Assembly (NCBI RefSeq): GCF_002113885.1
Contig: NW_018407191.1
Span: forward strand, 520,744 to 584,743
Direction of reading: 5' to 3'
From: Mizuhopecten yessoensis
Lineage: Eukaryota
DNA length: 64,000 nt
The position numbers and the translations under genes were made by a program. This document shows, piece after piece, positions 11,366 to 56,242 of this stretch (positions are counted from its first letter, which is position 1; every line of letters begins with the position of its first letter). The notes below the pieces were generated by a model. The model was not told where the DNA came from and did no database searches. It was given only the letters and a program-made list of their open reading frames with translations.

Positions 11366-14300
11366 TGATTTTGTTTTGAATAAACATACTGTAAACAAAC
11401 ACGTTTTTGATCCGACTCATATTTTAGCACATTATTACGTTTTCGCAGATGAGTGCAATGATGCAGTCGCGTACGATTCATGCAGTAACAGTTATTTATT
11501 GAAACTCCAATTCACGCAGTTATAATTTAGCGCAATATAAAGAGCGCGGAAAGCGCTAAATTCAAAATACTGTTATAATATGTTACGTATGCAGTATGTT
11601 CCTTGCTTTGAATTATTTTATATCTACAGATGTATCAAGTAGAAAATAAAGTTGATTATGACATAGAAGATAGCGATTCCTCAACGAAAGATGGTTACAG
11701 GTTTTAATACAGGGTAAGTATATTAACCAAAATATACCTAAAACTTAACCGAAACATTTCTGCACGGAGTGCAACTTTTGCTTAACAAGCTGGAAATCAA
11801 TTTCATATAGGAAGGCATATCCCTTTATCATAAACTATTTAATGCATTCATGAAGTTCCCACTACACAATAACTTCGTGATGTCTGCTCTTAATATGAAG
11901 AACTGTCATCTATGTATTAATTTTTAATAAGGGGTGACATGTACGTGAAATCGTGTTTGCTTCCAATACATTTGGTGAATTACTGAAGAGGTGTTAAATG
12001 TATTGTGTTGTGCTGAGTATTTTAAATTCCAGTTTGCACATATTTGTTTTTAAGTTTCAGACTTTTAGATTGGTTAACATACAATGTTGATGCAATGTTG
12101 GAATATGGTATGCTTTGAACATTATCACCTGACCTTTTATAATTAATACAAATGCCAAATGAAAACAGCAACAACCATGAAGCAAGATTGCTGTTTTCTA
12201 GAGACCACCAAGTACGATATTTGGATTTTTATGGCGGTTCAACGAAGAAACTACATGTATATGCTCTTCACAGATAAGAATATCGGATGAACAAAAGATA
12301 ATTCAATTCTGTTGGATAACATTTATTGAAGAACCATTCTTTTTAAACAACCTTACATTTGACAACAATTTTGGGTCGAAATCGCTCAGAAATGTTCCGC
12401 AACAACAGAATGTTTTATATATAGCACTGCGGTTGAAATCAATAACAATGAAAAATACGTCAATTTAATATGAAAGTATAAATAATTACTGATCAATATA
12501 ATTCATAGATTAACATTGAAGGAGTAACAAAACAGCACGTTATCGTCGTGGTTACCGAACTGGTATAAAATAAAATACTCTTACAGAAACTGTATTCTCC
12601 CAACGTTTGGTATTTTTGTTTTGTTTAGTTACATCAGCGTCATTATCTTTGATGGAAGAAGAACTCAAGTTTAGGATATATGTGTGTATCAATACGAAAA
12701 ATGCTTATTAATAATGGATTTCCTTTCCGCCAACAAAATACAGTTTTACATTATTTTCCGTAGAAGAGTTCAATCTACTAAAATTCACATACTGAATTTC
12801 TTCTTCCATTCAAAGACTATGGAGAGATGTTTGTATCGCACACCAATCTTTATTTAATTTAAATTGCTTTGTTACCTTCAAAATACATCATATCCAGTTC
12901 GGATGTATTAGTTTAATCTTATATGCGTTTTTAAAGCGGTGTATTGACCGTCTTCTGTCGTTTACTTCCACTGGGATGTCTATACCAGTGGTCTAACTCC
13001 TCAACTGTGGTCGGGAGCTCACGGCCTGATGTCTCGGACAACAGAGGTAAAAGTATCGTCACTGTTAGACACATTATTCCAAATACTGCACCTGGGGCCC
13101 AACTTACTCTTTCAGCCTGAAATATCACAAACGTTCGCAGTATATTATTTATCTTATACAAATACTAATAAATGTGTGGATGAGTTAAGGAATGTATATG
13201 TTTACTGTGAAATATGAGGACGGAATTGGTGTGGAGGTTTTCCAACAACAAATGCGCACTTATTGTTTTGTTTACGCTTCGGTATATCTCAGTTGCTCCC
13301 TTATGCATGGAAGATTGTATAACCCCTTTGAGGTTCTGATCAGAAACAAACTGCTTGCCCCTATTTGAAGATTCATTTTTAAAAATAATTGTGGTCTCAT
13401 GGAACTCACTTACGATAGCTGATGTGACAAACTTCAGAAAATGTTCAATCGTTGTCATTTGATATTATTTAAAGAGTTATAAGTACAAAGGACACAAATA
13501 TGTTATATTCAAACAATCTCATCAGTGATGATAGTTTTACAACAATGAAAGACAAAAAGGTCAAAAGGAATATTCCAATTAAGGTTCAGAGATAAAGCAA
13601 TGCTCAATATGTACCCACCAGTGGACCAGCAAACGGTGCCAACATTCCACCAATTCGTCCAGCAGCGGAGTTTTAATTCCTACGACGATAATGCAAAAAT
13701 AAAAGGTATGAACAGTGCACCCGAATTGAAACTAGAAAATAGTTGCCCTGTGTTAACGAACTGCTGCCGGGTGTCCACGAATAAATATTTCCCTCGTCTC
13801 TACGGAATCGTAGTGCATATATGTAGCTATTGACATTCTTGCTAAACCAAACATTGCTACTTTTATCAGAGTGGTGTATTCAATATGTATACAGAAAGTA
13901 TCACGTAGGAATAGTCATTCGCAAATATTTCTTCAAGTATGATTTGATATGTGTAAATTTCCGTTTCGTGATCTTTTTGTAATGAAGATGTTCAATGTCG
14001 TACGACACGAAACAAAATAATTTGCGAAAAAAAAACTATTTAGAATATATACACGGGATCTTCCACCCCATGAATCTTGGTAAAATCTATAAAGGGATTC
14101 AATCATTGAAATCTTTCAAATAATTTGAGCTTTATTAAATATAAATAGCTCTTTTTAGAGATACGCGTCAACAAATTTTAAAGGGCAAAATAATAAAAAA
14201 AAACACAACAACACCCCAACTCGGGTAGTCTCACTAAATCACGATCCTGTACTAAAATATATAACATGCCTTCAACATGTAGTATGCATGGAATAGTCAG

Positions 14301-15232
14301 CCATTTGGAACTAGCTGAAAGGTAAGTTTGCGACATTATTATGGCTACAATCAGCATATCTATGAACAGTAAAAGAAGTTAAAGTAGATACTAACAAAAC
14401 TTGACTCAGGTGATTGCTAATTCAAAAACCACTATCGGTTGTTCCCTTTTTCTTGACTGCATATTGGTCCATTATATAAATTCTTGAACACTTCATTTAC
14501 AAATAATTTCTTACATAAATTGTATAATCGAACTCAAATGACTCAAATACCCCCATTAATTTATTTCACCTACCATTTTGGAACCATAGAAAACTAAAAA
14601 TATGTGTTTACATGATTTTCAAGTAAATATTCTTCAATATTCGCAAGTTTTACAAAACTGTTTTTAAGTCGAATTACGTTGCACATGACAAGTCGAATTA
14701 CGTTGCTCATGATTGATAAATGAATATACTTTTCAGCGACATAAAATAGAAATGTGTTGAATACATATCTTATAATTCGTTAGCATAATAAATATTCATG
14801 CTTAATAAGCTATTTATTAATCTTTGAAAGTCCTACACAATTTATTCTCTTGAAAACAAAACACTTAAATATAACTCGACGCTGTATACATATATGTATA
14901 TGTTTCACTTTGTCCATGATAAGATAAATATTGTAAATAAAATGTTTACCTGAGATTCGTAGGGTAGAGCTCCGGAGTCAGGAGGAATATCGTACTAAAT
15001 GACCCAGATATACCAAGCTTTCCCAGAAAATAGAATATCATCAATGCTATTTTGGCGCCTGCTCTCTCTAAAATTAAAATCGAAAATTAAAGTTAACTTT
15101 GTTTTTACAAACTTATCCCGTTCTCTTACGCTCAGGGACAAAAAAAGTTTTACAAAAGTTTGTGTTTTACATATATCTTGGGACTTCATAAATCACAGTT
15201 TAGGAATGCTCTCTGTTAATTCTTAAGATGAA

Positions 15233-15464
15233 ACTGTAAAATTGAAAATTTTCGCGGTGTGGATATGTTCGCGTTTTTTTGCGTTGTGTTAATGAGTGTG
15301 AAAATATTCACATGCAATATCTATTAATGTACGATATATATTATAGATATATAGAATATATCGATTTTTTAATCATTGCCAACGCGAATATTTCCACATT
15401 GCGATCATATTGAAGAGTAATAGCGCAAACATTTCCCCGCGCGAAAATATCCACTTTTACAGTA
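15233..15464. mobile_element. MITE (Tc1/mariner-type ends)
   Basis: TIRs ACTGTAAAATTGAAAATTTTCGCG and CGCGAAAATATCCACTTTTACAGT. Confidence 0.7.
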
Positions 15465-18400
15465 CATTAATTTTAATGAAATTCTTCTTTTCGAAAGATA
15501 ACTTTAAATTGAAAATCAAAGCCGAAATATTTCCCCGCGTCTCCTAATGGGTATTATAGGGTTAAAACTGTCTGTACCAGACATCCTTATGAAACAACAT
15601 TCTATTGTTCTGAGTGTACGGATTTTCATGTGTTCTGCGTTTACATATAAATGTTTGGTGTTCTGTTTCACTGGTTTGACCGTGAAATATTTTTAATTGA
15701 ACAATGATTAAACACTTGGAGTGGGAAAAGTTCTAGCTAACATTGTTGTTCATACACGTTAACATTAATTTCTAATTAATATTTTTTAACATTACACCTA
15801 CCTGAAAAGTAGTTTGCTATAGTTCCCGCAATGAGCGACACAGCTGCCAGGGCATGGAACAGAATACATATTCTTTTCCTCCCAAACCTGAACAAGATGA
15901 TTTCAATATTTAAATAAAATTTAGAAAAAAAAAATCCTTCAATAAAATATATAATACAGTAATATTTGTATTGTTAGTGTTTATATATTTCACGGTGGCG
16001 AAGTGATATGTAAATATAGACCTATACAAGTTTCTAAGTTGTAGCAATGGTATTTGGCATGTATTGAAGCAGTGTTACGTTAGTTCCAATTTGAAATAGC
16101 AACAGCTTGATACCTTCCGATTGCATTCTGTTAGACTTTGATGTAAATTGACGGGTCCATTTTTCACGGTCTTCTTTATTTTTATGAATAATAAAGAATA
16201 AGCAATTTTAATAGCGTTGATATGAGACAGAGCAAGCATTTTACTTACTTATTCAATGTAAAGTACTCTATAACTGCCACAGGATATTCCGCTAAAGAGA
16301 GGAGTAAAAAGCTCAAGTAGCGATCGAGAGGCAGGGAAGCAGACGACAAAACAAGCCCGTAGTACGTCAAACTATTCACAGCCCTGTAAGAAAAAAAAAG
16401 TAAACAAGTAATCCTTGTAAACTAGTGATTAGTTTGGTGTACATGGTTTAATGTACTTAAACAGTTAATTGTCGCTTTAGGACGTGTCTCCAAACCAGTT
16501 GTAGCCTTTACCTTAAATAACAGCTACCATTGCTTCTGACTTTGGAATTTCTATGCCTGGGGACATTATCCATTGCCTTCATCACATCTAGTGCAGGTTT
16601 TGCAGAATTGTCTATACTTCGGCCAATATAAAAGATATACAGTAGAATATCTATCATTTATCACATAATGTACTGTGTAATCCAGTGAATATTACCCATG
16701 TAATATTTTTTGCATTTAATATGACCTATCAGGCCTGTGATTGGTTGTAAATTTCAATTGTTTCGATTGTGACGTCACGCCTAGGACAAGTACATGACGT
16801 CACAGACTTACGCACTGGAGTCAAAATGGCGACTTTTTACATTTCAATGTTGCATGATAATTGTCGTTTTACATAAATAAATGCCACAAGTCTTGATTAT
16901 GTGATAAAAAGGATCGTACTATCGTTTTCATTTCATATGAAAATACTATGGCGTTGTTAGGAATGCTACAAATGAGTTTAACTTTAGAGCGTTGATGTCA
17001 ACGACACAATCGTGATGCTTTTTGCTCGTTTGTTTAACGAACATGGACTAAGATGCCTACTAAAGTATTTGAGTGTTATTTTCCTAAAACCTGTCCATTT
17101 GGCTATGAATACGTAAGCAATATAAGAAGAGGAGGTAAACCCATCTATGGTTGTTTAAAAAAAAGTATTATAACATTGCAACCAATGCATCACAGCTATT
17201 TATCTTACCAAGACGACGTCAAATAGTGAGTGATGACGTCTTATGCGTCGGCACCTTATGGGTTAAATTGTTCAAAAGGTGAATAGCTTTTTTATATTTT
17301 ACTTTTTTTTGTGTATTTTTAAAGCTCACCCATTAACTGAGTAAAATCTTTCAAAATAGGAAATATTTTAGAAGAGTAAAATTACTTGCAAAATAACGAG
17401 GTTTTACCTTGTATATTGATCAAATTGTTAAAGAATAATAAAAATGTCGTTAAGTAGTCTTTAAGCTTATCACATTTTGAACAACTTGACCAAGGTGTAT
17501 TAGACTTGCACAAGTCCGATAATTTCGATACCATCAAAATGGTCAAAATGTCATTGAATGTAAATACGAGGAACGAATCCTTAAATAAAAGACTCGCTTA
17601 CCAAGTATACGACATGATGATGGTGATCATCGCTATTCTCCGCCGTGTAAACAATGTCAGTACCGTGTATTTTGGTAGGGCAGAGTTGGATGGGTCCTGG
17701 ATATCTTCTCTTCGTCTTTCACCTTTTTCATCGTGTGTATTCCCACTTTCGTCTTGTTTCAAAACCAGTGGTTGTGATGAAGAGGCGTAATCTATTATCC
17801 GAAGGACATCGCTTTCGTTGACTTTATTCATTTTTGCAGCCTTCTTCAATATTGCCTTAGCTTCCTCTATCTTATCATTAGCCAAAAGCCAGCGAACAGA
17901 TTCGTGATATAGCCTGTGTCGAAAAAATGTGACATATCTTTTTTATTTTCGGAATTTGTAATTTCTTTGTTAGTGCAAAAGATAGAACAATATAGCATGT
18001 TACAAGCAACTGTGCTTAACGAAACATCATCGTAAATATTCTTAACGTTCGGAATCGACAAATTTCTTCATAGTTAGTAAACAAACATATTTTATATAAA
18101 ATACAATATACAATGAAATGTATTAAATATTTTTTTCAATATAATTCAGAATTCGATTAAGTGGGTCTATTGACACGACTTTGAATACATATATAATAAT
18201 TATCGTTTCCCGTAGTAGTTTTCTAGCTTAATTTTGTTTTGACCTGATACGTACATAATATGTGCAAAGTCCTCATAGTAATAAAAAAAAAATGAAATAT
18301 TCAAATATTTTCATATTGTTACTTACATTATAATTAAACGTAATCAAGACAAAAACAAGCTTAGACAGGAACAAAAGTGATTGAGCAAGAATTGAATCGC

Positions 18401-19279
18401 AATGTAGATTAGCTAGATTATGATGCGTCTATATTGTTATTTCAATGAAACTGTTTGATGTTTGTGTCTTTTTCCATAAACGAATTGTCTATAAACGTAA
18501 GGCAAAAGGTAAGCGTACATATTTCAGCGGTATTCCTTTTTTTTAATATTTTAAGTTTTTAATATTGATTACGCTGATTGAAGGTCTTGTATCATCTAGT
18601 TTTCAGTTGTATAAATGGACAGTACGCCACGTGATCAATGTGCAAATAAGTTAAAAATCGATTGTACGCTGAATTTAAAGTCCGAAAAAATAAGTGATTT
18701 CTAAGTATTATGTTTTCCGCACTGTCAGACCCACTGTAACATTTCTAGGTATATACAAATATCGATTTAGGTGCACACTCTCAAGAAAAATCCGTTTGTT
18801 CGGACCCCCTGTGATGTTCATATTGGATATCACTGTCGTAATTGTTTGGTAAAAAATGAATTTGAAAGATTGTCTGGACACAAATAAAGGATACAATTTG
18901 GTTACCATAGCAATTTGGTTACCATAGTTATTTGGTTACATTGCTATTGGTTACCATAGCATTATAATCCAAACAATATGTGTTGTATACACACCAATAG
19001 CCGACAAGACTGTATGCAGAGTACATTGTCATGATAAGGTAGGTGTTTCGCCACGAGAGGTTCCGAAGGAGGTAAGCAACTGGAGCTATTACGATGATGC
19101 CGCATGTCCAGAAAGTTACCCCGAGTACTTCAGTCATGTATCTGGATTCTGCCGGAAGTAGTTCAATAGTCATCACTGTCCGAGTCATAGACACTCCCTG
19201 TTATTTTGGGAGAAATGTTTTTTCTTTGTTATTAGAAGCTAAATTATATCAAGCACAAGTTTGTATTATACCTGTTTAA

Positions 19280-19362
19280 CCCTTTCACCACTGTGGGCCA
19301 TAATGGGTTCATCCAGGTCAATGCATGTTAGAGTTAACTAAAGTTGGATAGGGGTGAAAGAG
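19280..19362. mobile_element. 83-bp piggyBac-like MITE
   Basis: TTAA|CCCTTTCACC ... GGTGAAAGAG|TTAA. Confidence 0.6.
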
Positions 19363-21116
19363 TTAACATGCGTTTACCGCGATAAATAAAAAAAGAAATA
19401 CCACCAAGGCCACTTCGTGTTTATTGAAACTATTATAGAATTCGTATTTAAATTCTTTCTTACATTGTAGGATATTGCAACAGTATCCACAATGCTTTAA
19501 TTCAAATGATTCGAGTTATGAACATTGCACAAATAGGGTAAAGTTATTGGAACATATGATTATCGGATCAACAAATGTGCACACTTTTGTTGCAAATTCA
19601 TCCACTTTGGCACACACTTTCTACCCAATCGATTACAGTGTAATAAAAACAGGAGTCATCAAAATTATAAAGAAACATGATTGTAATATGCGCCTCCTTT
19701 TCATAAGAGTTCTTCACCCGGAAATGTATTATTATTATTTACGACAGGAAAATGCAGCAAAGCTGCTGGACACCAGATCTTTAAATGAAAATCACTTACT
19801 GACAGTCCAACAACCACGAGGAACACATACTGCATACTTTAATTTATTCTCCGACTATTAATGGCATTAATTTTAATGTTCAGAATGTTCTGCTCACGCC
19901 CAATATCCTCACATATTGCTTTATTGTCACTTAGAAATTTTACCAAGGCAAGAAAACGTCCAATTTTAACTGCATGTTAGATGTCAACAACTGACGCTTT
20001 CTCAGAAAATAACGACATTTTCTGAGAGAGAAGATGCAGAACATGATGAACGAAAATTACAATTTATACCTGCCGCAATTTTTACAAAGATTTCATTTGA
20101 TAATACACTTTTAGATAAACTATTAACTGTCTTCTGGGTTAAGGTGTTAGTCACAGCCGATTTTGAGTTGAATTTTTCATTTATAACTGGTGGAGGGTAC
20201 TTGTCAAAGAAATTGTTACCTCTCGAGTCTTAAACGAAAACAAACTCCGCCATGACGCTAGTTTTCTGGTTGTTATTGAATATTTGTTTTAAACGGGTGA
20301 AGTACATATCTAGTGTTTAACGGTAAAATTATACCATTTTCTTTTTATAACACTTTTTAAGTAGCTCGACTTAAATATTGACGTTGGTTATATATACTTG
20401 TACGAAAATAGTTTTCATACCACAAATGTATATTCTGTTTTCATGCCGTCTACAAACATGTCTACAATATCCTTTAAACTCGGACCTTTCATGAATTCAT
20501 GAATACGTACATGTGCAAATTCTCTGACGGCTCCTTCGTGTTTGTTCATGATTATGTTCGGGCTAATATCAAATCTTATCCGATTTAATTTCGTGTCCAT
20601 AAATGCCCTTTCACATTTGCAATTATTTTTACACACGATAGCTTTCGTGTTTTTTCATAGTACAAACGGTTTTACATCCATGTTGTCACTCATGTTACAT
20701 TTTTGAATCTACATCCGTGTCGGCTTTCACGTATGAAAGTTTGAGTTTATGCTCATTCATGATTTCATTGATGTACATATTTTTGTCATCATTTTTGTTA
20801 CAATATATATGCTCATCCGTGTATTTACTCATATTTAATTAACATTATCTGTCTGACTTAAACAGGGTGTCCATATCATGCGATACGACTAGTTGATCAC
20901 CCGCAAACACAATGTCATTTTTGTTTTTTCGATGTTGTGTAACTGTGGCAAATGTGTTTATATTGTTCCCTACCTCTTGTCTTTCATTCCCCACTCTTTG
21001 TTCCCCTCGCTCTTACCTTTTAGTTATCCTGGTTATCTGGCAGTCGTACACGTAACAATAACAGAACTATCCGTTAGCAGTCTCCATGTCCATACTTCAT
21101 ACTTTTTCTATCGCTC

Positions 21117-23570
21117 ATGACGGGGTGCTCATTATCCACATGGAGATGTGCTTTCGGACTATATTACTCTAAACAAACCCATTTAAACAAAACGTACAGA
21201 TTCCACAACAACACTTATTCCTGTTACGATATATTTAAGCTACATTTTATATATTTGCCTGTAGCAGTTGTTTTTATTGTTTTTCTACAGACATATAGCA
21301 ACCCAAACAACATCGCCCTTTTCTTAATCTTAATCTTACTTCTGTCAGGGGATATACATACAAATCCAGGACCAGCAGACAGTTATCTAACGACTTCGAC
21401 TCCGACAATATATCCTTTTCTGTTTCTGACGATAACTCATTAAAAATCATGCATTTGAATATTCGAAGCGTTAGAAATAAAATTATTTTCTTGAGAGTTT
21501 TACCGATGACGTAGACATATTGTGCTTAACAGAAACACATCTCGATCCTTCTATCCCTGATTCTGACCTACTTCTTACTAACTTCTCAACAATATTTAGA
21601 AAAGACAGGAACGCTTTTGGTGGCGATATTGTGATTTTTTCAACTTAAGACATACTGCCTAAACGCAGACTTGATATTGAATCACCGAATGACGAAATAA
21701 TTTGGATTGAATTTTGTACTGATAATAAGAAATATCTTCTATGGGTACTATACAAACCTCCATGGAAAAATACTAACTCTGGAATTTGGACTCTACTGAA
21801 ACATTCTTTTGACATAGCTTTTGACTACACACCTCAGGTTATATTAACACAGGATACTAACATTGACTTATTAACAGGAAATAACATCTAAGCATTGTAA
21901 CACAGCAATATAATTTAACTAACCTGATTACCAGTCCAACTAGAGTAACAAATACTACACAATCCCTTATAGACCCATACAAAATGATATCCAATAAAAT
22001 ATCTGCACCCCTTACACTTCTATTCAACGAATCCTTTCGTACTTCTGTATTTCCTGATTCATGAAAATTTGCCCATGTGACACCTATTTTCAAAAAAGGG
22101 GAATCTGAATTGGCAAATAACTACAGACCCGTTTCTTTACTTAGCTGCATTGGCAAACTCTATAACTATTTCTTCAGCAACAAACTTCTATATACTTTAC
22201 AGTCCATCTTCTTACCAAATCACTCTACAACTCACCAACTCATCGAACTCTATCATAGCATACTTACAGCACTGAAGAATCGTGAAATGCTGCTCTTGTT
22301 TTTTGTGACTTTTCTAAAGCTTTCGACCGAGATAAAGGTCTATTAACAAAATGAGAAACATACGGAATAAAAGGTAAACTTTTAGATTGGATAAAAAACT
22401 ACTTAAGTAACAGACGCCAGTCAGTCGTACTAAAAAATGCTATATCTTCTGAAGTATCTATCAAATCCGGAGTTCCTAAAGGTTCAGTGTTTGGGCCACT
22501 TCTTTTTCTTGTATACATCAACGATATTTCAAATACACTACTTTCAATTACTAGACTTTTTACTGACGACACCGCATTAGCAAACTGCTCTTAAAATTTA
22601 CACGATATACAAAAAGTAATAAACTATGACATGGAATAATTAAACCTTTGGTCAAATAAATTGTTAATGAATTTCAACCCAAATAAAACCGAAATACTCT
22701 TAATTTCTAACACAAATATACCTTCTAACCCACAATTTCTTTTCGACAACACACCTATCCCTATTGTTAAAAACCACAAACACCTAGGAGTCATCATTAG
22801 TAACAACGGCACATGGAACTCTCACATTGAACATGTATTAACAAACACAACAAAGTACATTGCAACTTTAAGGAAATTAAAATACATCCTAAATAGAAAA
22901 AAAATGGAAAAATATACCTTGTTTTTATAAGACTACTATTTGAATGTAATATCACATTTTCGAATAAATCAGAGAACATGCAGTAGGAAGCAGGTCGAAT
23001 AATAACTGGATAACCTATTTTTACAAAATAAAACAAAACAAAATACAGAGACCTCGGATTGAAATCATTGACAGATAGAGGCAGGATTAGAAAATTATCC
23101 ATGTTTTATAATATTTATCATGATACTGCTCCCCCATTTCTAAAATCTCTTCTACCACCTATTGTGTCAAACTTCTCTAGCTATCATCTTAGAAACATGA
23201 ATAATTTTCAAAACCCATACTATAGACTGCAAGTCACAAAAGCATCCTTCATACCAAGTACTTCAGACTCCTGGAATAATCTACCAATGGAGACAAAGTC
23301 ATCAGAATCCATTAAACAATTCAAAACTCCACCTCAAGTCACTACCCCTTCTTGTATTAAGTGCTTTCTTGAATATGGGTCTAGAAAAGTTAATATTATA
23401 CATTGTCAATTACGAAACCGCAGTAGCTCTTTAAATTACGACCTTTATAAAGCTCTCCTTCGAGACAACTACTTGCGAATGCGGAAATGACTCAGAAGAC
23501 TCTTCCCATTTCTTACTTAACTGTAAAAAAAAATGATCAATACCGTAATATAATGCTTCAATCCCTCATA
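21117..23570 (+). mobile_element. CR1/L2-group non-LTR retrotransposon, decayed and internally deleted, antisense in intron 3 of paralogue A
   Basis: LLLSGDIHTNPGP; APE endonuclease remnants (MHLNIRSVRNK, DILCLTETHL, RKDRNAFGG); RT motifs (VTPIFKKG..NYRPVSLLS, SGVPKGSVFGPLLFLVYINDI, LFTDD, HKHLGV); C-terminal Cys/His remnant. Many stops and frameshifts. Confidence 0.9.
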
Positions 23571-25119
23571 TATAAGATGTTTAAGATGGCATACAGCAAA
23601 AGAGGTAATGATAGGATTAGGGACACCAACGTATAGTTTTTAAATATGTATTCGGAGAGTTTACTTGAGATCGCGTGTATGATTTTTCTAATCGAGTCGG
23701 CGTAAGTAGTATACCTAATCTATACACACATATCCTTCTGCTTTTCTAAAGTTCAATTGCAATTGTGCTGTTGCTGCTATAATCTGGTAAAATTTCCAAA
23801 CGAAAATGACATCAATGATGTAATTTTGTAAATACTATAATGTAAGTTGCAAAAGTTGAACAAAGCCACCATGATATCTTCACTTGTGAAGATATGACAT
23901 TTCGTAGGTCTTGACTGCAGTGAAGATAAAATAATTTGTCAAAGGAGAGTTAAGGACATTTCGATGGAAAATAAAATAAATACGGATAGTGTAATGTTAA
24001 CTATCATATTATTGTAGATAGTATGCGGCATCAATTTCCCAGAAGGCTTTCACGCATCGGGAAGCACCGGAAGTGGACTAAGTGTTTACAGATCAAACAC
24101 TGCGGCGCTTTGCGCCGCTTAGGGGTTTGAAAAAGACATTTTAAAAGGAGATAGATCTAACATAATTTTACGCATACTATCAAAGATTACATGTAGAAGG
24201 TATACCTGATGTGACACGCCGCAAATGAACCGCATAATGGCAAACACAATGAAAGTTGGTGCGAGAGAAGCGGTCACTCCTGCGGCGAATAGAACTATAT
24301 GTGACGTCACCAGAACCAACTTGCGTCCGAATCTGTCTGATAGCTGAGGAAGCAAGGCTGCCCCCACCATCTGTCCGATCATCAGTAACATTTGGGAGAT
24401 TTCTGCTCTCTCCGCTCCATCACACACGAGATTCCACTAAGGCATGCAAACTAACGTTTAACATTCATACAAAAAGCAAAATACACAAATTACGTTAAAA
24501 TCGCCTTATGTTAAAAGCGCATAAAACGCTCTCTTTTCTCAAAAATACGAATTAAATATTGCATTGACAATTGCTCTGACTTTCTCTTCCCGATAACATT
24601 TACGCTATACTAAATGCCGTTCAGGAGGAATTTAGAATTTCAATATTTGACGGAAGCATTATTACGTAGATTTATATGAATTATCCATTACTCTAAAATA
24701 AACCGATAGCGCTTGTTCCATGTCTCAAAATTGTGCTGAAAATGTGTTTTGTTTTTCTTGGATTGTTTGGGACCAATTTGCATTCACAGATTTGTCGAGA
24801 TAAAAACAAGTAGGAACACGATATGTTGTGCAGAATATACAAATGTAATTACCCATTCGGTCGGAGCATTAGGTTTTGCCTGCGGTTTTTTGTCGGATTC
24901 GTGATATCTCTGCTTTTGTTTTTTCGTGCGTTTCGTCTTTTCATGTCGACTTTCATTTAAATGATTTTTCCTTACCCTCTTAGTTAAGTTGAATATATTT
25001 TTAATTTGAAAAGAAGCATTTTGTCAAATATAATTTAACATGTCCTTCTCTAGATCGTACGTTACGTATAAATGCAACTTATCCAAATTACAAACGTTCG
25101 CTGATTCTCTCGCCTGTTT

Positions 25120-26095
25120 ATCGATCGGGAATCGTCGGCACTTTCCGTAATGCTTCAGTCACATTCGCGCCGGCCGCCGGCCAGGAAGCAGGAAGCGGCC
25201 GTCTTCCTGGCGTCCCGGGGACTTTTTTTCCGATGTCTGGGATTAACTTGAGCATGTACACATGAGATACGGGCACCGCACGGCCCCAGCAAACATTTTG
25301 CAGGATTAAATCGAACGGACATCTGAAGTATACCGTAGGGATCTCGTAAGACTATCGAAAGGATACCGCAAGGCTATCTGACAATGGCCGGGCTGTCGTA
25401 CAGTAGCTGGAAGATGTTCGTGCGGTCGTGTGACGGGCGGGTTACGTACGTAGCCCGTATGATTATAAAGATGCGGCGCATCAGTACTACTTTGGTGGCA
25501 TACGGTAGTACTACAGTATCACATCAGTACCGGTACGGTACACATTGAGGCAACCTGAGAGCCGCCGATCCATTACCGGGCGCTACCGGTGTTCTACCGG
25601 AGTACTGCCGGAGTACTGCCGTTGTGGTCCCGTTGCTCGGTCCGACATCGCAACGGCGGACATTTTTGAGCTCCGGCTCCGGCGACCCAAATCGACTAGG
25701 TGTGACAGGCCCTTTTTACGATGTTGTACGGTACCCGTCCGGACATCGGGCGGTCTACAGGACAGTTGGGAGTATGTAAAATTGTAAAAATATCCCAAGA
25801 TGACCGTACAATGCCACCGGAAGCCGTGAGATAATCTTACAAAATCCTTGCGGGACACCTATGGGAGACTGCTGGGTAGGTTCCGATGAGTTTGGGTCAG
25901 AAAAAAACGGGCGGACACCGCAACTATTATCTCTGCTCTAAAGCTCCCGGCGACCCGTGCGGCGTCTAAAAATCGGCCGTTAGTGGCCGATAACCTCCCG
26001 GCGTCCTTATAACGGTTCCCTAGCTTGCTGGCCGATTTTGACCAAAAAACTAATCGCCCGGGCGTCTTTTCGGAAAAACGAGACAGTATAATAAT
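25120..26095. mobile_element. GC/CpG-rich ~1-kb insertion, probably a non-autonomous DNA transposon
   Basis: Abrupt GC-rich block with many short CCGG/ACCG/CGGT motifs and no credible ORF. It lies between units of the 58-bp array, and no such block is present in the matching intron of paralogue B. Confidence 0.5.
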
Positions 26096-26310
26096 TTTGT
26101 AACACACATTCGGCCCACCTTTAGCACGTACTTATGTTAACTAATGAAGTACCTTTGTTATACACATTCGGCACATCTCTAGCCCGTACCTATGATTACC
26201 GATGAATCAACTTTGTAACACTCATTCGGTCAATCTCTATCCCGTACCCATGCATACCGACGACTTACCTCTGTAACAAACGTTCGATCTTTCTCTAGAT
26301 CGTACGTATA
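26096..26310. repeat. 58-bp tandem array including the 3' end and splice donor of SLC22-A exon 2
   Basis: TAG/TAT anchors of the CTCTAG-like motif at 26122, 26180, 26238 and 26296; remnants at 25046-25112. Confidence 0.8.
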
Positions 26311-27109
26311 TCCTGCCGGACATGGTGACAGTTTCATCAGAGTCGTGTTGGTACCATTTATGAGGATATCTACGTGACAGGCTTGGTACAGAGGAGTGAG
26401 ACTGGCGTTCGACAGTGTGTCATACATACTGGTCGTATTCCCGAGGTCAGCACATTGGTACGATGGACGATATCCTAAGGACGTAAAATGTATACTGATA
26501 ATTACTGATCGTAAAATAATCATGAGAAAACCGGACAGTATTTTTTTTTCTTCCTAATCGCAAGTTTTCACACAACTTTTCACAAATTATATTAATTGCA
26601 AATGATGCAATTATACTAACTTATTTTGTGGGTAAAAGTTTAGAATAAAAATTAACGAATAAATGAATAAATACAAAAAAATAAAAATAAAAGATCGATA
26701 AATAAATTCATAAAAAATTACAAAAAGTAAATTAAAAACAGAAAAATATAAAAGAAGACCACATTTTCCCCTCAAATCAAATCAATAATAAATGATTTAG
26801 TTAAACTTAATTATTACCAATGACACTGTATTTTAGGGTTTTATTTAAAATAAAAAATGTAGATATAAACAAATGAAAAAAAGTCCTATACAAAATAATG
26901 ATGAGAATAACAAAATAACAGTAAATAAATAAAAAAAAAAGTCCATAAAGCTATTGTTTCGCTCGTAGTTATGGAAATGTATACGCTGGTAACATAATAC
27001 AGTAACATTACGGATGATTTGGCGTGAAACGTAAAAATAAATATTTTGATTACGAAAGTCTATAAAACTAAAGACAGCTGAAGCTTAATACATTTTAGTA
27101 CATCACATG

Positions 27110-27702
27110 ATAATTACTAGGATAGCTATTGGATAACTACCCTTGCTCTATTTGGAATAGTTAGCATCCGCCCTTGACGACGGGAACTATACCTGGAGAC
27201 GGGCACTACACCTTTTTTTGGACCGCTGAGACTGCGGGAAAAGTAGCGTGACGCCAAGAGTTGCGCCCCTTCTCCTAGGGGGCGCTGTTCATATTCTACT
27301 TTCAGTTCATTGTTGTCGTCTGCCAAAATGGCTTCGAGAGTCGGGACCGGGATTGCCGATTGCTTTGCAGAGGCTCAGCAATGTATGAAAACGAAGCAGG
27401 CGACACAATTTACAGTCACAGTCCTTAAAGAGTTCCTCCTGGAAAGGGGAAATGTATGTGATCTTGCGACGATTCAATGCAGTGAATTTAACGGTGTGTT
27501 GGCGGATTTCTATGCCAATATACGCAATGCATTTCCTCGTGTTTGTCTTTTTATGGTCAAATGGCAGTCATGTGATGAACTAAATCTATTATGACCCTTT
27601 CCCTCGGGAACAGTTCTCTTATAGTGTTGTCTGGGGAGGGCACTATACCTCCCCAGACAACACTATAAGAGAACAGTTCCCTCGGGAAAGGGCCATAATA
27701 GA
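27110..27702 (+). mobile_element. Crypton-like (tyrosine recombinase) element remnant with terminal palindrome
   Basis: ORF 27310-27594 (KTKQATQFTVTVLKEFLLERG...EFNGVLADFYANIR) resembles the SAM-like region upstream of Crypton/DUF3504 YR domains. Nested inverted repeat at 27585-27702 with CCCTCGGGA motifs. Confidence 0.6.
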
Positions 27703-29949
27703 ATATTGGTAAATGCTAACTTTGTTTTGAACACCAATCGTAATGGTAAACTTCTTTGGCGAGCTTTTGAAAACGTCGGTTTCCTTTGACAAGAAAAGAG
27801 ATCAGGGGACCGGTGTCTCGACCCAAACCAGAACAACTGATTGAGTAGTCTCGTTCAACCAGACTCTTGTTGTCTGAGCAAGCTACGCCGAACAGAAAAT
27901 TACAAGTGATCAAGCGTCTGGTTGAACGAGCTATTGACTGAGCCACAATCTGACGAAACAGGAAATTCAGAATGTATCGAAATATTTCACCATATAGCGC
28001 TATGTTGAATTTCATTCCGAAACATTTTGGTATTCTAGAAAAATAAATTAAATGGGTTAAATTATTTTAGCAAACAAAGAAACTCTATCGTTTCAGACAA
28101 AGCAATGTTAGGCTCGATATCATTATTGTCGTTTGGTATATGACGTAACAAAATGGATGACGATGATGACGTCAGAACCGAACCAGTGGTACTCGTTTGT
28201 AACACACAAAATTTTAATAGACTCAATAGGGGAGCAAATAGCAGGAAACGTTGGACAAAATCAGAAATCAAACTCATTATGAATCGAAAAGACAACATAT
28301 ATGAGACACCAAAATGAAAAACTGAAATAAACAAAAGGCACCATGAATTCCCTCAAAAGTACAAAAGAGAAACCATATTATAAGGAAAAAACATCGTTAT
28401 ATATAAAATAGATCAAGTTGATAAGATACTTGTCTATCATAAATTTCATAAACGGCAGTGATGTAGATTCAGTAAAATCTTTTTAGAAAGGATCCCATAC
28501 CACAAACAAAAAACTATACCTTATAGGACTTTTATGAAAAAGTATAAAAATGAAAATAAGCAAAATACAATCAGCAATAGTGTTTTGGTTGTGAAACGTT
28601 GAGCGGGGCTAGACCAGGATTTGAACTCTTGGCCGGCTTTAGGTTGTGTTATCGCACCTCGGACAAAATTGTTGCATCTGATTGGTTAAAATCGGGTCAC
28701 GTGGTGACCCCCTATGAGACTATAGGGGTCAGTAAAATTTCTTAGGCGGCAATTTGGCGGCCCTTGTCTGTCGCTTCGAAATTTAAACAAATCAGGTCTA
28801 AAATACGCCTTCCCAAATATCCCCGAACGAAGACCTTCCTGTGTGTATTTTTCGCACAGAATTGTCCTGAAAAGGTTAAAAAAAACGTTTAAAAACATTT
28901 ATAAGAGTTGCCTCCCCTATGCCCTCGTCCTCACTCCCTATGAATTTGACTGACCCTTTATGGTTCCATTGTAGGTCAGTAACAAACCATTTAACTAATA
29001 ATATGCAGTTACATCAAAAACAAAATTAAGGGGAGGTTACTGTATACATGTAAACCATATTATGCAGTGGGACAGGGATCCTTATTTTCCACCAATGGAG
29101 TTATATTTGCATTATTCATCAAACAAATACTGTTGACGACATCAAAATAAAAAATAAGTCGCCACGTGCGAATTGAACACATGTTTCATATCTCGCAAAA
29201 TCATAATTGTAAAACACAAACGTTACAATAATTATTCGTGAAAAGTTTATAACATACAATATGAAAAGGTTATTCTGATGGCCGAAAATATTGTTACGCA
29301 CTGTTAATCAAAAACAGTACATTTGATTATATTTACCAATGAACACTATGATCATTAGTTGGAAGGCCTCGCTCCCATAGGTCGCCATGTGTAAGGCCAT
29401 CTGAATTCGCTGGTAACGCCCCCATGTTCCTAGTGTACGCCAGATGTTGTCCAGAAAGTGCTGGTCAGTCATGGTCAGTGCGGGACAACTGATGCTGTAT
29501 GTGTCTTAAACATTTGTTATACTACACAGCTATGACGAAATAATGTAATAAGTAATCAATAATGTGATACAACATATCACAAACCAACAAGGAAGCATCC
29601 GAAAGACATCAGAGCAAAGTCAATGATGTCAAATTCTCTCGGAACATCTCTTTGTTTATGTTACAGACATGAGCTATTGTCATGTGCTTTATTCATACCA
29701 GTATCCTTTCTAGGGAACACTGACTTTTTTAGTGACTTACTTTTATATTCGCAGGTCAAAATATCTATCTCGTGTAATATACATGCTATTCAAAGGTGTT
29801 ATTCTTGTCACGAACCATAAAGAGTTGCCCGATGGACCGGACACAAAATATTCATTTACTAGTATGAAATCCCACGCTCACGCCTGATGATGAACCCTGT
29901 CGTCTAAGTAAAACATTCATATGGTGAACTTTGCTAGTTCCTACATTTT

Positions 29950-34140: not shown

Positions 34141-37100
34141 CTAAAGTGAAGTATCTACAGTCTTTTTCCGTTGCATTCCGCTGTGTTGTTTATACCAGCG
34201 CTCCAATTCTTCAACTGTGGTCGGGAGCTCGTGGCCGGTCGGCTCGGGCAACAGAGGCAAAAGCATAGCAACTGTTAGACACATTATTCCAAATATTGCA
34301 CCTGGAGCCCAACTTATTCTTTCAGCCTATAAACAAAATACATACAAATAACAAAACGACGATCCCATTAGTTGACCGTACACAGTCGTGTCGTATTAAG
34401 TTGTCGTTTATTTACAACTTTGACACACGAACTAATTTAACGTAACTTCATAAATGATAACATTTTTGTGAGAAAAGCATACAATATAATAGCATAAAAA
34501 TGGTAGAACTTCCCCGAGTAAGTCATTAAAAATATCGCGAGGCCTTCCAGACTAGCGTGATGTAATGAGAACATGGTGCTAAAGAAAACGCGAATTATCC
34601 CAACACTTGGTTGATACGGTTACAGTTCCGTTGTCGCGCTAAATTGTTCCTGTTGAATTAACATTTATATCTCACTCGTTTGGAAATATTAACCGATACG
34701 TTCACTCGTGCTTTGCACTGGTGATAAAAAATCATTATTCTGCTGCACATAAGAAATTATTATGGTATTCAACAGGAAATTTTTAAATATCTTTGTATGC
34801 TTACACCATGAACGAATTTGAAATAACAACCATGCGAAAATAAACCTTTATATTAGCAAGATATACCGAATGTACTTACCAGCGGACCAGCAAAGGGTGC
34901 CAACATTCCACCTATTCGTCCGGCAGCGGATGAAAATCCAATGCCAACATTCCTGAATAGAATGATTTTAATAGTTGAATTATGTCCCTAAGGAAATATC
35001 TGACTTCTATGTCATCCGCTCTCTTGGATTTAGAGAAGTTTCCCGAGAGTCAAAAATGCGCTGATGTATTCATAATGATGATGGAGCTAGGGTCAAAAAA
35101 GTTGGAAATCCGAACAGGTCTAAACTATGTTGAAACAGAATGGAAAGTTTATTAAAACCGTCAATTCCACAAATTTAAAACAAAAATAGAGGAGTTCTGG
35201 TTAATTTCAAATTCATTGCTAAAGTGTGTATATTATGAACCGTGTCAATACTCAAAAATTGGTTTGAGTATTGGCATAAGACGTTTGCGAGTAATTGTTT
35301 TATAAATTATACTGACAGAGTTGATATGTGATTGAATATGTAAGTGTGTTATTGCAGGTTGTGATAAATATTGTTTTCTATTTTGCTTATTGACCACATG
35401 TGTTGTTCTACAATCCATTGTTGTCGTGTTACGCTGTAGTGTGCGTATAAACAACAACCCATTTGCAAGTTATAAACGAGTGTCTGTTCGTATTGATTAA
35501 GAAGTTCCATCAGATCGTCTACTTCTAACTTTTCGCCTGCTCTTTTCTTTCAACGTCTTTCTTGTCCATTCCTAAATTCATCTACCTTTTCGAAAAAATA
35601 TCCCCGCTTTTGGCTTTAGTTTTGTTGAGCATGCACCGAAGTGTAATGCGAGCGGGAACATGCACGGCCAGACTTTGGATCGAACCCGGGACCTTTCGAA
35701 CTCTAGACGGACGCTCTACCAATTGAACTACCTGATCGCCGACGATCGACCCAGTCCAGTTCCGCTACATTCCTCCTGTCTTTTTCTAAGTCTTCGCCCT
35801 TGAAGACACAACTATTTACAACGTTTGTTTGGGTATCCCCTTGTTAAGCATTCACCTAGTACTTGAAACAAGGTTTGGTCACAGGCAGCAAATGTTTTAG
35901 GAGCGGGAAAAATTCACGGCAAAACAGGGGTTCGCACCCGGGACCTTCCCAACTCTAGACGGACGCCCTTCCAATTGAGGTACCTGGTTGCTTATATTCG
36001 ACCTAGTCAGTTCCACTACATTAGAACATATCTTCTTCTGAATCATAATGCACCGTATCAACATCGAAGACAAATGAGTCGTCGAAGATATAGGTCTAAA
36101 TTTCTTTTCATGACGTTTGACTTTCTCCTTGTCTTCACTGTTTTTTCTTTTAAAAATCTGGGCACCCGCGTTGAACGTCTCTTTGTTGATAGCGTATACG
36201 TATATTCTAACAATCAGACCATAGTCGCCACAGTATCGTTACCTTGTCGGCCATGTTGTAACTTCTGAATGGTCAATATATACATGTAAGTCACCAATAC
36301 AAATCTGTACGGGTTGGTGGTAGCCTATTCGAAGTAGCGTTTCAAGTGATGGGTAAGTCCGAGTACATATGTCGTGTAAGTGTCAGTATTTGCCATCCTC
36401 CTTTTAAGTTGTTTAATGCCACCATTGACCAATGACGCCGACTATCCCCGAAATAATATGAATCCATTATTCAGGATAACACGAACAATAGTGTGACCCA
36501 GACAGCTCTATGTAATTCCGCCTCACTTTTGAATATTCCTGGTGTCACCAGTCTATGGCAGGTGACCAAGATTTTGAAGAAAATATCTTCAAATTGTCGT
36601 TTCTTTTGGTGGTTTGAGTTTTATAGCGTCGACAGTAAAACTCAATTTTAGACAGTATAATCACAAATATTGCCGCCATTTTAATAAATAATAAGGTTTT
36701 CCAAGGCATTCATCTTATGCTAACCATGATCTCATTTAGAAATAAGCTATTTCTTTGTGTGATATGAAGGTCGATGCCTTTTATTATGCTCATTAGTGTG
36801 CCTTGTCGATTTGTTGAAATTAAGCGAGTTCTAGATGTGAGGAGGTGATGTTTCTTGGATGTTTACCTGATTTACAAGACGGGTGTCATAGATGAAACGA
36901 AATTCACGTACAATGCAGTTACCCGTCTGGAACTCCTGATCTTTTTCTCCTTGTACTGTGTTCATTTTGCCTTAATCGTATCGGTATTGAGTTCGAATTA
37001 TTGTTTGTTTACGCTTCGGTATTCTCTTGTAGCTTTTTGTTTTCGTTTTTGTTTTTAACTGATCATCATTATGAATACATTATTTTATAATTGTCCCTCT

Positions 37101-40100
37101 TAGGAAAAACCTTCAAAAATCCAAGAAGGCGGGTTACATAGACATAAAAGAAAAATAGGGGTCAACAAAGACGACCAGGACTACTCCGGTATTCAAATAT
37201 TTAACAAGCATAAGATTTCAGCATTAAACTGTAAAGAAAACATATTGATTTGTACTCATAGAAATCGGAAACATTCGTTTTTCATCGGCGGTGAATAGTT
37301 CAACGCTGATCTCATTTGAAGATATCCAAATTGAATAACAGATATATATTCAAAACGAACGTTAAATAAAGAAAGCTCAGTACGAACAATCCGCAGATTT
37401 CGCCGTGTTTGCACAGAGCAGTGTGTTACCTGAGATTTGTAGGGTATAATTCTGGAGTGAAGAGGAATATTGTGCTGAAAGAGCCAGCAATGGCCATTTT
37501 CCCGAGAAAATAGAATATCATCAATGCTACGTTAGCACCAGCTCTATCTTCAAAGAGATAAGAAAAACACAATGATTGTAATGGGTATGTCAATCATGAA
37601 CTGTTAAATAATTTTATATACATTTATCACATACCTGTTGAATCTTGTTATAGTAATACAAGTAATTTTCATATCATGAAATACAACGTTCTGTATTGCA
37701 CATGTGCAATACGGAATGTTGTATTTACCTACTAGCCGGAACTACTTTTTATGGTAATCCCCTTGTCATGGCGAACTGAAAAATTCCCGGTATTTGTAAA
37801 ATATATCGATCTCTACCAAATACGGAAGGTATGTGATTAAAGCAAGACCACACACTTGTGTTTTTCTAACGAATCAGAAAGCACTCATTTATTTTCGGGG
37901 ACGTATATATTCACTCGTTGCGCTCCGCGCACTCGTGAATATATTCGTCCGCGCAATAAATTCATGCTTTCTGATTCGCTAGAAAAATACAAGTCTTTCA
38001 TATATATCTATTTTAGGCGTTGTCATTTTCGCGGTTCAATAGTAAAAATGCTCGATAACAATTGTTTTAATAAATATTGTATACAAAGTGACTTTGATGT
38101 TGCATATATATTTTATTTTGGAGTTTGCAGTGATGCATGTAGAACATTTGTAAGTCGACATACTGTTTTTAAGATATTGACATAGCGTCAGTTATATATT
38201 TTATTTAGGAGTAAAAGTGAAAACAGCACTACGTCAAATCAATGAGTAGGTAATAAGTAGCATTTTCTGCAATTCACTTGCTATCTTGTTTCTTGGAAAA
38301 CGATTCATTAACGACAATTGTTTCATTTTGCATAAATAGCTGAAAGTCATTATAACACCCAGGTATTACCACGGTGAAAAATTTTGTAACCTACTTACAT
38401 GATAATCATCCCGGAAGATGTGACATTTTAATAAATTATGTGTACAGATTTTCTAAACAAATATGCCGACGCACGTAGCTCTTGAGCAACCGTATGGTGC
38501 AGTAAAATGGTTAATTTATTGGCTTTCAGCATCTTGTCACAACAACAGGGTCACAATACGCTTCATTTTCCGTATTTCTAATGATTGTATCAAGTTTTCT
38601 TTCTGTCTTACCCTTTAAATCCAAAACAAAATCGCTAAAACAGATGTAACGTCACGCTACCACAATTGGTACGCTACCCTAATCGGTACACAGTCAGAAA
38701 AGGGTTCGAACGGTACTTTAAAATAAAAATTATGTATTTTGTGAGATATTTATCAGCATTGCCGCAAAATAGTTTTGTTTTCAGCGACATTTTAAGAGTA
38801 CATGATTACTTTAAAGCAAACATGTCTGAAAACCAGAAAAAAAACCGACGTAAGTCGACGAAAATTTTAGTTCAGTAAGGTATTTATAAAAAGAATTATT
38901 TTTTATGCAATCAGAGCATCAACTAGTATAATTCAAGTTTCATAGCATGTGATAAGTAAGGTGTATTTTCATCATTGTCGAAAAATGGACGAAATCTCAC
39001 AGCGAGTTTAGCGTTCTATTTTTAAAAACAAATTTTCTTACATTTATAACTTATTCCTGAAAAATAAACCTACATGGACAGTCTTTGTCAAGAACAAGGA
39101 AACATTCCAGATACATTATCTGTATTTTTAATAATCACTGGAAAACTGTCAAAATTGTACCAATTGTGGTGGCGTGACGATACACAATCTACTGCTGGAC
39201 GTATAGACAGTATGTAAATTTAAGGATCAGTGAGACAATATGTAATGTTAACGATAATGAAATGACTCGTATATGCGAGGATTATTTTGATAAGGAAGGA
39301 TCTTGTGTATAGGGTGATGTCTAATCTTATCAATACGTAACCACTAGCATGAATCTGGAGTAAATAATGCCATATGGTCAATTCTAACTTGCTTACCTGA
39401 TAAATAATTTGCGACAGTTCCCGCTATGAGCGACACGGCTGCCACGGCATGGAATATGATACACAACTTCTTTCTACCTAGTCTGAACAATAAAGAAAAA
39501 ATGTGTATGATGATCATAATAATAAGCGAATATTTATGAAAAGTTCAATGTCACCAGGCGCGATATTCTGCTGTCCGGACAGAGTGCAGCCAATACACTT
39601 ATTTGGCACCATGTGGACCTTTTTTCCGCTTTCAATAATTGGGTCTTTTTCTTAAAAAATGTTTTATAGAAAATTTTATACTGTAAAACCTCGATTTAAT
39701 GCCCTTTGTTTGATTTTCTACTTCGATTACCGCCAATATATTTCAAGGTCCATTTTTCTTGATTTTCCTTTCGAATTTCCGTTTCCTACGTTTCCACAAG
39801 TTTATTGCCAAACCCTTTATAATGCCAAAAGTCATTTGGACAAATAGTGGCAGTATAAAGAGGTTGTTTGGAATCGGTATTTAATAATGTTGAATTAGGT
39901 AATTGTGTGTACGTTGTATGGATCTCATTCTTTATTCATCGATTTGATAATAAAATATAATGCAATTAATTTAATAGCCAATTTAAGACATTTTAACAGC
40001 GCGAAATTAAGTAACAAACTGCGAAAAAAACATGAAAAGCTGTACCCCAAACCCATTTTCAGTTTCTTATTAGGTTTTTATTTCGTTTAATATATTTGCG

Positions 40101-51310: not shown

Positions 51311-53081
51311 AATTAAAACCCTATATTTATATCGGCGTACGCCTTTGTTTGAAATCGAAGCTCGCATAACACGAGAACATAGGTAGTAGGTGGAATGGTA
51401 CGCAATGTTGAAAAGTCAAAAGTTTTGAAAGAAGAAACATGTTTGAGTAGAGGATGTAATCGATTGGACTACACAAATGTCACTATAAAGCCTTCATATA
51501 TATTCTTTTTTCAATCCAAGAATTAATTAAAACAGATAACACGTCAAACCTCGTTATTTTCCTGTTGCAGCTGTCACAAGCATCCATTTTAACAGCAAAC
51601 AATACAAATGCGTATATATATCAGTATTTGTGTTGACTACTTAGTATAGTGAATACAGTGATATTCGTTGGAAAAGATCTAATCAACAATGGGCATTCAT
51701 TAACTGTATCAAGTATTCTCCACACAGTCAAAATTCATCATGGTTTACAATTTTCTGTTTTCCATAATAAAGTCACAAAAGTTGTACACGAACAAGGATG
51801 ATTTTTTCTGAATGTGATCTCTGAATACAGGTTTGTGATTTCAGTTTACAGTAAAACCCCGCTAACTCCAACTCGTGGGGTCCAGATCAATAGTTCGAGG
51901 GTTACATGGTATTCGACGAATCCGAGGTTCGACCGACATCGTCATTTTGTTTTATCAGGTGTGACGACAGACAGTACGAGCGCACTGTAAATATGGCGGA
52001 TAGTAGAAGATAGAAGTAAAAGAGAAGTTTATTAAAGACGACAACATTTAATAAGATATAAATTAGCTGACCAATGAAAACATGAAGCCATCGGTATTAA
52101 GAAATAAAATGAAATACAAAGGCTGCCTGTGTAACGTACTTGTCGTTTTGACACAGTCCGCCATTCTGTAATAGGCAAAGTTAGTTTTACAAAATATCAA
52201 AATGCAAGGAACTCTTCGTTCATTTTAAAATGAAGAAAATCTTGACTCCCTGTTATCATAATGTTAACTGATAACAAAATTAACAATCACGACGTATTCA
52301 ATTATGAATATCTTTAAAGATGGTCCAGAATCCGCTATGTGATTCCTTTTTAAGATTTTAAATATGTTTTGATTATACAAAAAATATAAAAGTGGTGTGC
52401 ATTTCTAAAGACATATTCATTTTAAACACTTTCACAAAACCATTGCCGATACTTAAAGACATTGAAGTGCCATTTTTACCTTTTCTGTGCTTTAATAAGA
52501 CGTTGGGAGTAATTTCATATTTGCTACAATGTTGACATCATTAACTGCATGGATGGATAGCATAAAAACCTATTGAATGCACTTACCAACTGATTTTAAG
52601 TTGTTGCGTTATCAAATGAAGAATTCATTAAAACAGATAGCACGTCAAACTTCGTGTTGTTATCATTTTCCCGTTGAAATTGTTACAAGCACCAATTTAT
52701 AAAGCAAACAATACGTATGTGTATGTAAATCAATCTTTGTATTTACTACTTAATGTAGTGAACGCAGTTAAGCGATATTCGTTTGAAAATATTTCATTAA
52801 CAATGGACCTCTGAAATTATGAATATAACTCCGTACACATAACGTAACGATATACAATGTGGTAGAAGGAATCTTCATAAACCAATGTTTTTTTTATCTG
52901 AAATGAGCAAAACCACATTATCAGGAACTCTAGTCTTGCTCGGCGTCAAATTGTCAAATGAGTGGGTGTTACATGGCATAAGTCGAGATAAACCTTTGTA
53001 TCTACTAACTGGGTGATTTCTGTCTGCCGGACGTAAGCACTACACGAAGCGATAAGTTTCGAAGTATCTGTCCTTACCAAA

Positions 53082-56051: not shown

Positions 56052-56242
56052 TTGGTTTGTTTGTGGTTTACGTCCTGTTAACAGCTATGTTCATTTAAGG
56101 ACGTGCCAGTGTTTTGTTGGTGAAGGAAAGCCGGAGTTCCCGGAGAAAAACCACCGACCAACGGCCAGTACCTAGGGCCAGTGTTGGATGACTAGCGGAA
56201 GCAGAATGCCAGACGCCTTAACCACTTGGACACTGCGGCTCC
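56052..56242 (-). mobile_element. tRNA-derived SINE (V-domain-like), internally deleted
   Basis: Head GGAGCCGCAGTGTCCAAGTGGTTAAGGC, core TTTTCTCCGGGAACTCCGGCTTTCC, (CAAA)n-like tail. Confidence 0.7.

Follow-up and report, generated by a model that had tools for sequence, protein, structure and literature searches.

Conversion between tandem paralogues that is limited to segments of the genes is already well documented. In mammals, partial gene conversion between the tandem genes TLR1 and TLR6 has been described (PMC2077338), and the tandem ATP1A1 paralogues of Leptodactylus frogs are reported to undergo concerted evolution (bioRxiv 10.1101/2020.08.04.234435). Mammalian gene pairs that have been under conversion for more than 100 Myr have also been described (PMC2720389).

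A pair of scallop genes adds a tidy and well-supported case. These tandem paralogues of SLC22 type share a near-identical second exon, which short-tract non-allelic (interlocus) gene conversion between the two very probably explains.

Locus and gene models

The window (the whole stretch of DNA analysed, 64,000 nucleotides) comes from the Yesso scallop, Mizuhopecten yessoensis, which is also the species named in the NCBI annotation of the encoded proteins. It contains two SLC22-type genes, A and B, arranged head to tail and both in minus-strand orientation. Gene B (34141-48225) has 10 exons with canonical AG/GT borders and encodes an intact protein of 565 amino acids. Its exons lie at 48090-48225, 46543-46748, 45370-45600, 42996-43198, 42296-42619, 40340-40474, 39397-39482, 37430-37547, 34880-34952 and 34141-34326 (exons 1 to 10), and the model is identical to NCBI protein P0029, a 565-residue 'organic cation transporter protein-like X1'. 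Gene A (12931-29472) follows the same ten-exon plan, with exons at 29337-29472, 26269-26474, 24206-24436, 18995-19197, 17602-17913, 16249-16383, 15802-15887, 14950-15067, 13619-13679 and 12931-13116. Its exons 1-4 correspond to NCBI protein P0034, a 280-residue model that runs on into intron 4. Searches with gene A were run exon by exon or with the stored proteins P0029 and P0034, and for alignments and trees the exon translations were lined up, an X marking each junction.

P0029 matches the profile TIGR00898 over positions 3-506 of 506 (E 1.3e-96), the top match among all NCBIfam models, although its score does not reach the equivalog-style cutoff. Further matches are to the Pfam families PF00083 (Sugar_tr) and PF07690 (MFS_1), and the nearest solved structures of P0029 in a PDB comparison are OAT1, OCT1-3 and URAT1. 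The MFS fold and the full-length family profile match of B place this transporter, and with it its paralogue A, in the SLC22 family (TC 2.A.1.19). The exon 2 peptide has 68 residues and lies between TM1, in exon 1, and TM2, in exon 3. It carries four N-X-S/T sequons and cysteines at positions 7, 32 and 51, and an alignment of its C-terminal part covers residues 90-123 of the OAT1 structure 8bvr, just before TM2. The exon is predicted to encode most of the TM1-TM2 ectodomain.

Several other features were observed. The protein P0001, secreted-looking and 754 amino acids long, has 13 repeats of PCPSGYERKYE, which resembles PCPAGYTYDLE of the SLC22 loop; the likeness may be due to chance or to a distant module resemblance. 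In the window, a tandem duplication spans 51518-56487 and 58086-62931 (81-93% identity), and both copies contain an open reading frame (54741-55250 and 61245-61670) whose predicted product is a Cys-rich C-terminal domain. A long tandem array at 1852-2741 gives many staggered self-hits at 82-86% identity. Within gene A, intron 1 harbours a high-copy dispersed repeat at 27044-27963, where DNA-run k-mer depth reaches thousands and many loose contig ends occur, and intron 3 contains a run of open reading frames (21117-23490, plus strand) that by eye resembles a degraded non-LTR retrotransposon reverse transcriptase.

Extent and significance of the exon 2 identity

Exon 2 of A (26269-26474) and exon 2 of B (46543-46748), which lie 20,274 bp apart, are identical at 204 of 206 nucleotides. 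The two mismatches, at 26371/46645 and 26389/46663, are both synonymous (Val GTA/GTT and Leu CTG/CTT). In both genes the exon is bounded by AG and GT on the minus strand, and identity continues unbroken beyond it, over the adjoining 24 nt of intron 2 (as far as 26245) and the adjoining 8 nt of intron 1 (as far as 26482). The whole tract, 26245-26482 in A and 46519-46756 in B, the probable donor lineage, thus matches at 236 of 238 positions (0.84% difference). Copies of exon 2 in the 988-Mb assembly are restricted to A and B.

The rest of the gene pair is far more diverged. For exon 2, dS between A and B is 0.04 and dN is 0; for the other nine exons, pS is 0.605, dS 1.23 and dN 0.21, with an amino-acid identity of 69%. 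Nucleotide identity elsewhere is 57-80% per exon, except in exon 9 (88%), and counted over whole codons only 24 of 45 amino acids in exon 1 and 37 of 67 in exon 4 are shared. From the rest of the gene, exon 2 would be expected to show approximately 29 synonymous and 28 non-synonymous differences, and the binomial probabilities of the observed values are 5e-17 for at most two synonymous and 3e-14 for zero non-synonymous differences. The longest A-B stretch with no more than two mismatches measures 207 nt, whereas 20,000 shuffles gave at most 80 nt. Since none of the shuffles reached the observed length and the binomial probabilities are this small, chance is excluded.

A self-comparison of the window confines A-B similarity to the exons, except for the stretch beside exon 2, where weaker homology persists for about 150 nt deeper into intron 2, dropping from 88% to about 75% across a 58-nt tandem array. 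These results bear out most of what the original prediction had described. The same two synonymous sites were recovered, and the reported reach of identity into the introns (about 24 and 8 nt) was confirmed, with the addition that weaker homology in intron 2 goes further. The earlier counts of 25 of 46 residues for exon 1 and 38 of 68 for exon 4 agree with those given here once split codons are added. The proposed glycosylated, Cys-bearing TM1-TM2 loop is likewise consistent with the sequons, the cysteines and the alignment to the end of the OAT1 ectodomain.

Comparison with other scallops

Near-identity within one genome could in principle reflect extreme purifying constraint on the nucleotides of exon 2, imposed by an embedded RNA or regulatory element, with no exchange between the genes. 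The identity of A and B does cover synonymous sites, as such constraint would demand. The reading makes exon 2 a slowly changing sequence between species as well, and for the comparison B orthologues were obtained from Pecten maximus (L003) and Ylistrum balloti (L004) at the DNA level and from Argopecten irradians at the protein level. Against Pecten B, exon 2 of the Yesso scallop has a dS of 0.84-0.99 and a dN of 0.096, with 163 of 204 nucleotides identical (80%); against Ylistrum, dS is 0.76-0.82. The other exons of B give a dS of 0.99 and a dN of 0.088 to Pecten. Between species, the exon 2 loop therefore evolves at the ordinary rate of B, silent sites included. The interspecies comparison refutes nucleotide constraint, the probability of which is now negligible. 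It had been foreseen that equal conservation of exon 2 at synonymous sites between species would speak against conversion, and the Pecten distances show the opposite. Because exon 2 has diverged normally between species, exchange must be the source of the near-identity of its two copies within one genome. A signature of gBGC was not detected; the GC3 of exon 2 is 0.46-0.47, equal to that of the orthologues.

Searches for an orthologue of A, using the exon 2 peptide and word searches with P0002, P0034 and P0034:1-114, returned only B orthologues and members of a more distant C clade. Searching the Pecten and Ylistrum loci by tblastn with all exons of A and B also yielded no A orthologue, and in Pecten maximus no A-like exon was found within 8.6 kb downstream of B. 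Upstream of the B orthologue, the same species has an SLC22 gene of the C clade in head-to-head arrangement (L003 1-4334, minus strand).

Age of the paralogues and probable direction of conversion

A tree built on the gene minus exon 2 unites the four B orthologues in a clade (support 100/99) that leaves A outside, and an AU test rejects a clade of A and Yesso scallop B (p=0.001; p=0.019 without exons 9-10). The branch leading to A is long, which could have displaced it from the B clade. For exon 2, A is equal to Yesso scallop B, unlike in the tree of the rest of the gene, in a comparison of A with the B orthologues of other species. At a pS of 0.60, A and B differ as much at synonymous sites as species do from one another (0.55-0.61), a comparison in which those sites are near saturation and ages are accordingly rough. 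The position of A outside the B clade, this high divergence and the lack of intron similarity together indicate that the paralogues are old or have long been without exchange. A and B would thus have separated, or ceased exchanging, before Mizuhopecten split from the lineage of Pecten, Argopecten and Ylistrum.

A different history would make A a recent copy of B in which every part but exon 2 changed very rapidly. Such a history would fit the long dN branch of A, the slightly closer match of A to Yesso scallop B than to Pecten B in most exons, and the lack of an A orthologue in the 8.6 kb downstream of Pecten B. However, the A-B pS matches the interspecies values, which relaxed selection cannot cause; the AU test rejects the required grouping; and a young duplicate is hard to reconcile with a self-comparison that aligns no intron sequence of A and B except beside exon 2. 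A recent duplication is consequently considered highly unlikely, and an old pair with recent exchange in exon 2 remains the preferred history.

The non-synonymous distance from exon 2 to Pecten B is compatible with B-like divergence (P=0.41) and scarcely with A-like divergence (P=1.3e-4), which indicates that exon 2 of A is of B type. At both variant sites A has the Pecten letter and B a derived T, suggesting that the two changes arose in B after conversion. Conversion therefore likely ran from B into A, and B then acquired two silent changes; the evidence for this direction is the distance to B orthologues. The difference across the tract (0.84%) does not exceed the flanking difference of about 1% between the reference and an independent DNA run (X14), so that the event appears as young as allelic variation.

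Independent DNA and RNA data on gene A

The reference assembly is fragmented (988 Mb in 82,659 contigs), and a repeat of 238 bp is a classic site of collapse. An assembler, or a gap-filling step, might for these reasons have placed a single exon 2 into both loci. Contigs of one independent DNA run (X14) and three RNA-like runs (X15, X16 and X19) were compared with 24100-29600. RNA contigs from X15 and X16 contain the splice 29337|26474, which joins exon 1 of A to exon 2, and all 205 nt of exon 2 are matched without mismatches and with the letters of A at both variant sites. An RNA contig from X19, a third study, has the same joint. The contigs of X15 and X16 also contain the joint 26269|24436 between exon 2 and exon 3 of A, and a loose contig end at 24205 in both runs is read as the start of exon 4. 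Gene A thus truly carries a B-like exon 2, and it is transcribed and spliced.

The DNA data agree. In X14, one contig spans 26220-26482 with a k-mer depth of 20.1, against 7.5-12.6 in its neighbours. It breaks at 26482, exactly at the first upstream difference between A and B; its left break, at 26220, does not coincide with the first mismatch in the reference, at 26244. The flanking introns differ between the reference and X14 at 34 positions in 3,477 nt (approximately 1%). With about twice the flank depth in reads compared at the A locus, the tract is present in two copies in another individual. In addition, 14 DNA runs from five studies contain 94-100% of the words of exon 2 of A with its flanks.

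These observations, together with the two sites at which the copies differ, weigh heavily against an assembly artefact. Moreover, B needs an exon 2, and exon 2 is of B type. The artefact is largely refuted for A, and its overall probability is very small. A divergent exon 2 in one copy, the mark of an assembly chimera that had been named as fatal to the idea of conversion, was contradicted for copy A by the RNA joints and the twofold DNA depth, in reads that covered the A context.

A further observation concerns intron 2 of A (24409-26298), which is covered end to end by low-depth contigs in two RNA-like runs, at roughly one-ninth of exon depth. Intron 1 is mostly uncovered in the same two runs. 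This coverage suggests partial retention of the intron, which carries an array of pseudo-donors.

Proposed mechanism and exon-sized borders

A plausible course of events begins with a break in or near exon 2 of A, very recently, that was repaired from B 20.3 kb away, so that approximately 238 bp were overwritten. Both the direction and this repair mechanism are inferred. The tract ends near the exon borders, where A-B homology ends. Prior to the exchange, no alignable sequence would have been common to the introns of the two genes, and a heteroduplex could not have reached far past the exon. Because the introns share no homology, the borders fall at the exon, and selection is not needed to explain why the exchange is restricted to it.

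In A as in B, the start of intron 2 is occupied by a 58-nt tandem array on the minus strand, comprising three units in A (26095-26268) and five in B (46258-46542). The unit is a diverged copy of the tail of exon 2 and its splice donor, and several units keep a GT after AG. The similarity of 86-91% among units 2-4 of B suggests that the array expanded recently. Identity between the arrays of A and B is 88% in unit 1 and approximately 75% in later units. Genome-wide, the array is found only at the A and B loci, and a dispersed repeat was rejected as its origin. Intron 2 of Pecten and of Ylistrum has no tandem array, and its start resembles a single unit by eye. This adjacent minisatellite may have favoured breaks or pairing.

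Whether conversion has recurred bears on the original prediction, which spoke of recent or recurrent conversion across 20.3 kb between old paralogues. A recent event and old divergence are both supported by the distances and trees, and recurrence is suggested. Conversion needs high prior similarity, and most other exons are only 57-80% identical, which suggests that earlier rounds may have kept exon 2 similar enough to convert. The decaying homology in intron 2 and a lower dS in exons 9-10 would likewise fit several events of different age, without proving them. Exon 10 of A (12931-13116, minus strand), with exon 9 a candidate for older conversion, has a pS of 0.39 to B, against 0.65 between B and Pecten. 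Taken together, exons 9-10 give a pS of 0.36 between A and B and of 0.59 between B and Pecten (Fisher p ~0.03, from small numbers), and their silent differences between A and B are fewer than in the rest of the gene (binomial 4e-4); these are distances, used because quartet trees cannot discriminate between the hypotheses for these exons. For intron 2, the decay of homology could also have arisen from separate expansion of the array in A and in B, or perhaps from patchy repair at the end of one tract.

A more ambitious reading would treat exon 2 as a lasting island of concerted evolution, which the lineage-specific 58-nt minisatellite, acting as a hotspot of breaks and pairing, re-copies and in which selection retains a shared external face. 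This is regarded as improbable, and the present results do not require either the minisatellite hotspot or the shared ectodomain. Short-tract conversion, guided by where homology ends, is sufficient.

Integrity of gene A and the proposed role of a shared ectodomain

An intact frame of 12 TM segments is lacking in the reference allele of gene A and present in gene B. Exon 9 of A has an in-frame TAA (13673-13675, minus strand) that adjoins a 12-nt deficit relative to B, corresponding to the loss of the VGIG codons conserved in B. Exon 10 of A is still open and is 70% identical to that of B. As judged from the reading frame, the reference allele would end after exon 8, without exons 9-10, which by comparison with SLC22 relatives are taken to encode the two final helices. 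When the distances are roughly partitioned three ways, omega on the A branch comes to about 0.19, so the damage to exon 9 would be recent. Gene A may be a recent pseudogene, may be represented here by a null allele, or may encode a truncated product.

The state of gene A is relevant to the idea that selection maintains concerted evolution because both transporters need the same loop, whether for hetero-oligomerisation, for a shared external partner or for trafficking. That exon 2 should encode most of the TM1-TM2 ectodomain, with its four sequons, three cysteines and alignment to the end of the OAT1 ectodomain, lends this idea some appeal, as do the transcription of A and the hints of more than one event (the drop in intron homology from 88% to about 75% and the lower dS in exons 9-10). 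However, the loop changes between species at the same pace as the other parts of B, and the restriction to the exon follows from the missing intron homology. The in-frame stop in exon 9 and the NCBI model of 280 amino acids also argue against a second transporter that needs the loop. Furthermore, the RNA path from exon 1 to exon 2 of A is unbranched, so that those samples give no evident sign of B being co-expressed. Maintenance by selection is thus an unlikely explanation, and recent conversion between adjacent genes accounts for the shared exon more simply.

Comparison with known systems

Within their protein family, the scallop genes resemble OAT1, OCT1-3 and URAT1 in the full-length TIGR00898 match, the Sugar_tr and MFS_1 domains and the predicted glycosylated, Cys-bearing TM1-TM2 loop. 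Unlike the vertebrate members of SLC22, A and B are mollusc lineage-specific paralogues without a one-to-one vertebrate orthologue.

The consequences extend beyond this family. The pair shows cleanly, in an invertebrate, that the reach of conversion between old paralogues can contract to a single exon when intron homology has been lost. Annotators and phylogeneticists should also take it as a warning, as the history recorded in one exon of these two SLC22 genes is not that of the rest. Were the minisatellite hotspot or the shared ectodomain to prove true, a local repeat would be tied to concerted evolution at the level of a domain within a transporter family.

Among systems of conversion, TLR1/TLR6 as described (PMC2077338) shares with the scallop pair a tandem arrangement in which part of the coding sequence is homogenised while the rest diverges. 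That system differs in being seen across mammals and in a known heterodimer, whereas the scallop exchange comprises one exon-sized tract of 238 bp in one species. The account of Leptodactylus ATP1A1 (bioRxiv 10.1101/2020.08.04.234435) similarly features ongoing non-allelic conversion between tandem duplicates of a membrane transporter, and a mosaic of homogenised and divergent segments. There, however, the gene is mostly homogenised with small islands that resist, whereas the scallop genes have mostly escaped and exchanged one exon. The criterion applied to the mammalian pairs of more than 100 Myr, as given in their description (PMC2720389), is the same as here, namely that paralogues are more alike than orthologues over a stretch; unlike in those pairs, the scallop exchange is seen in a single species.
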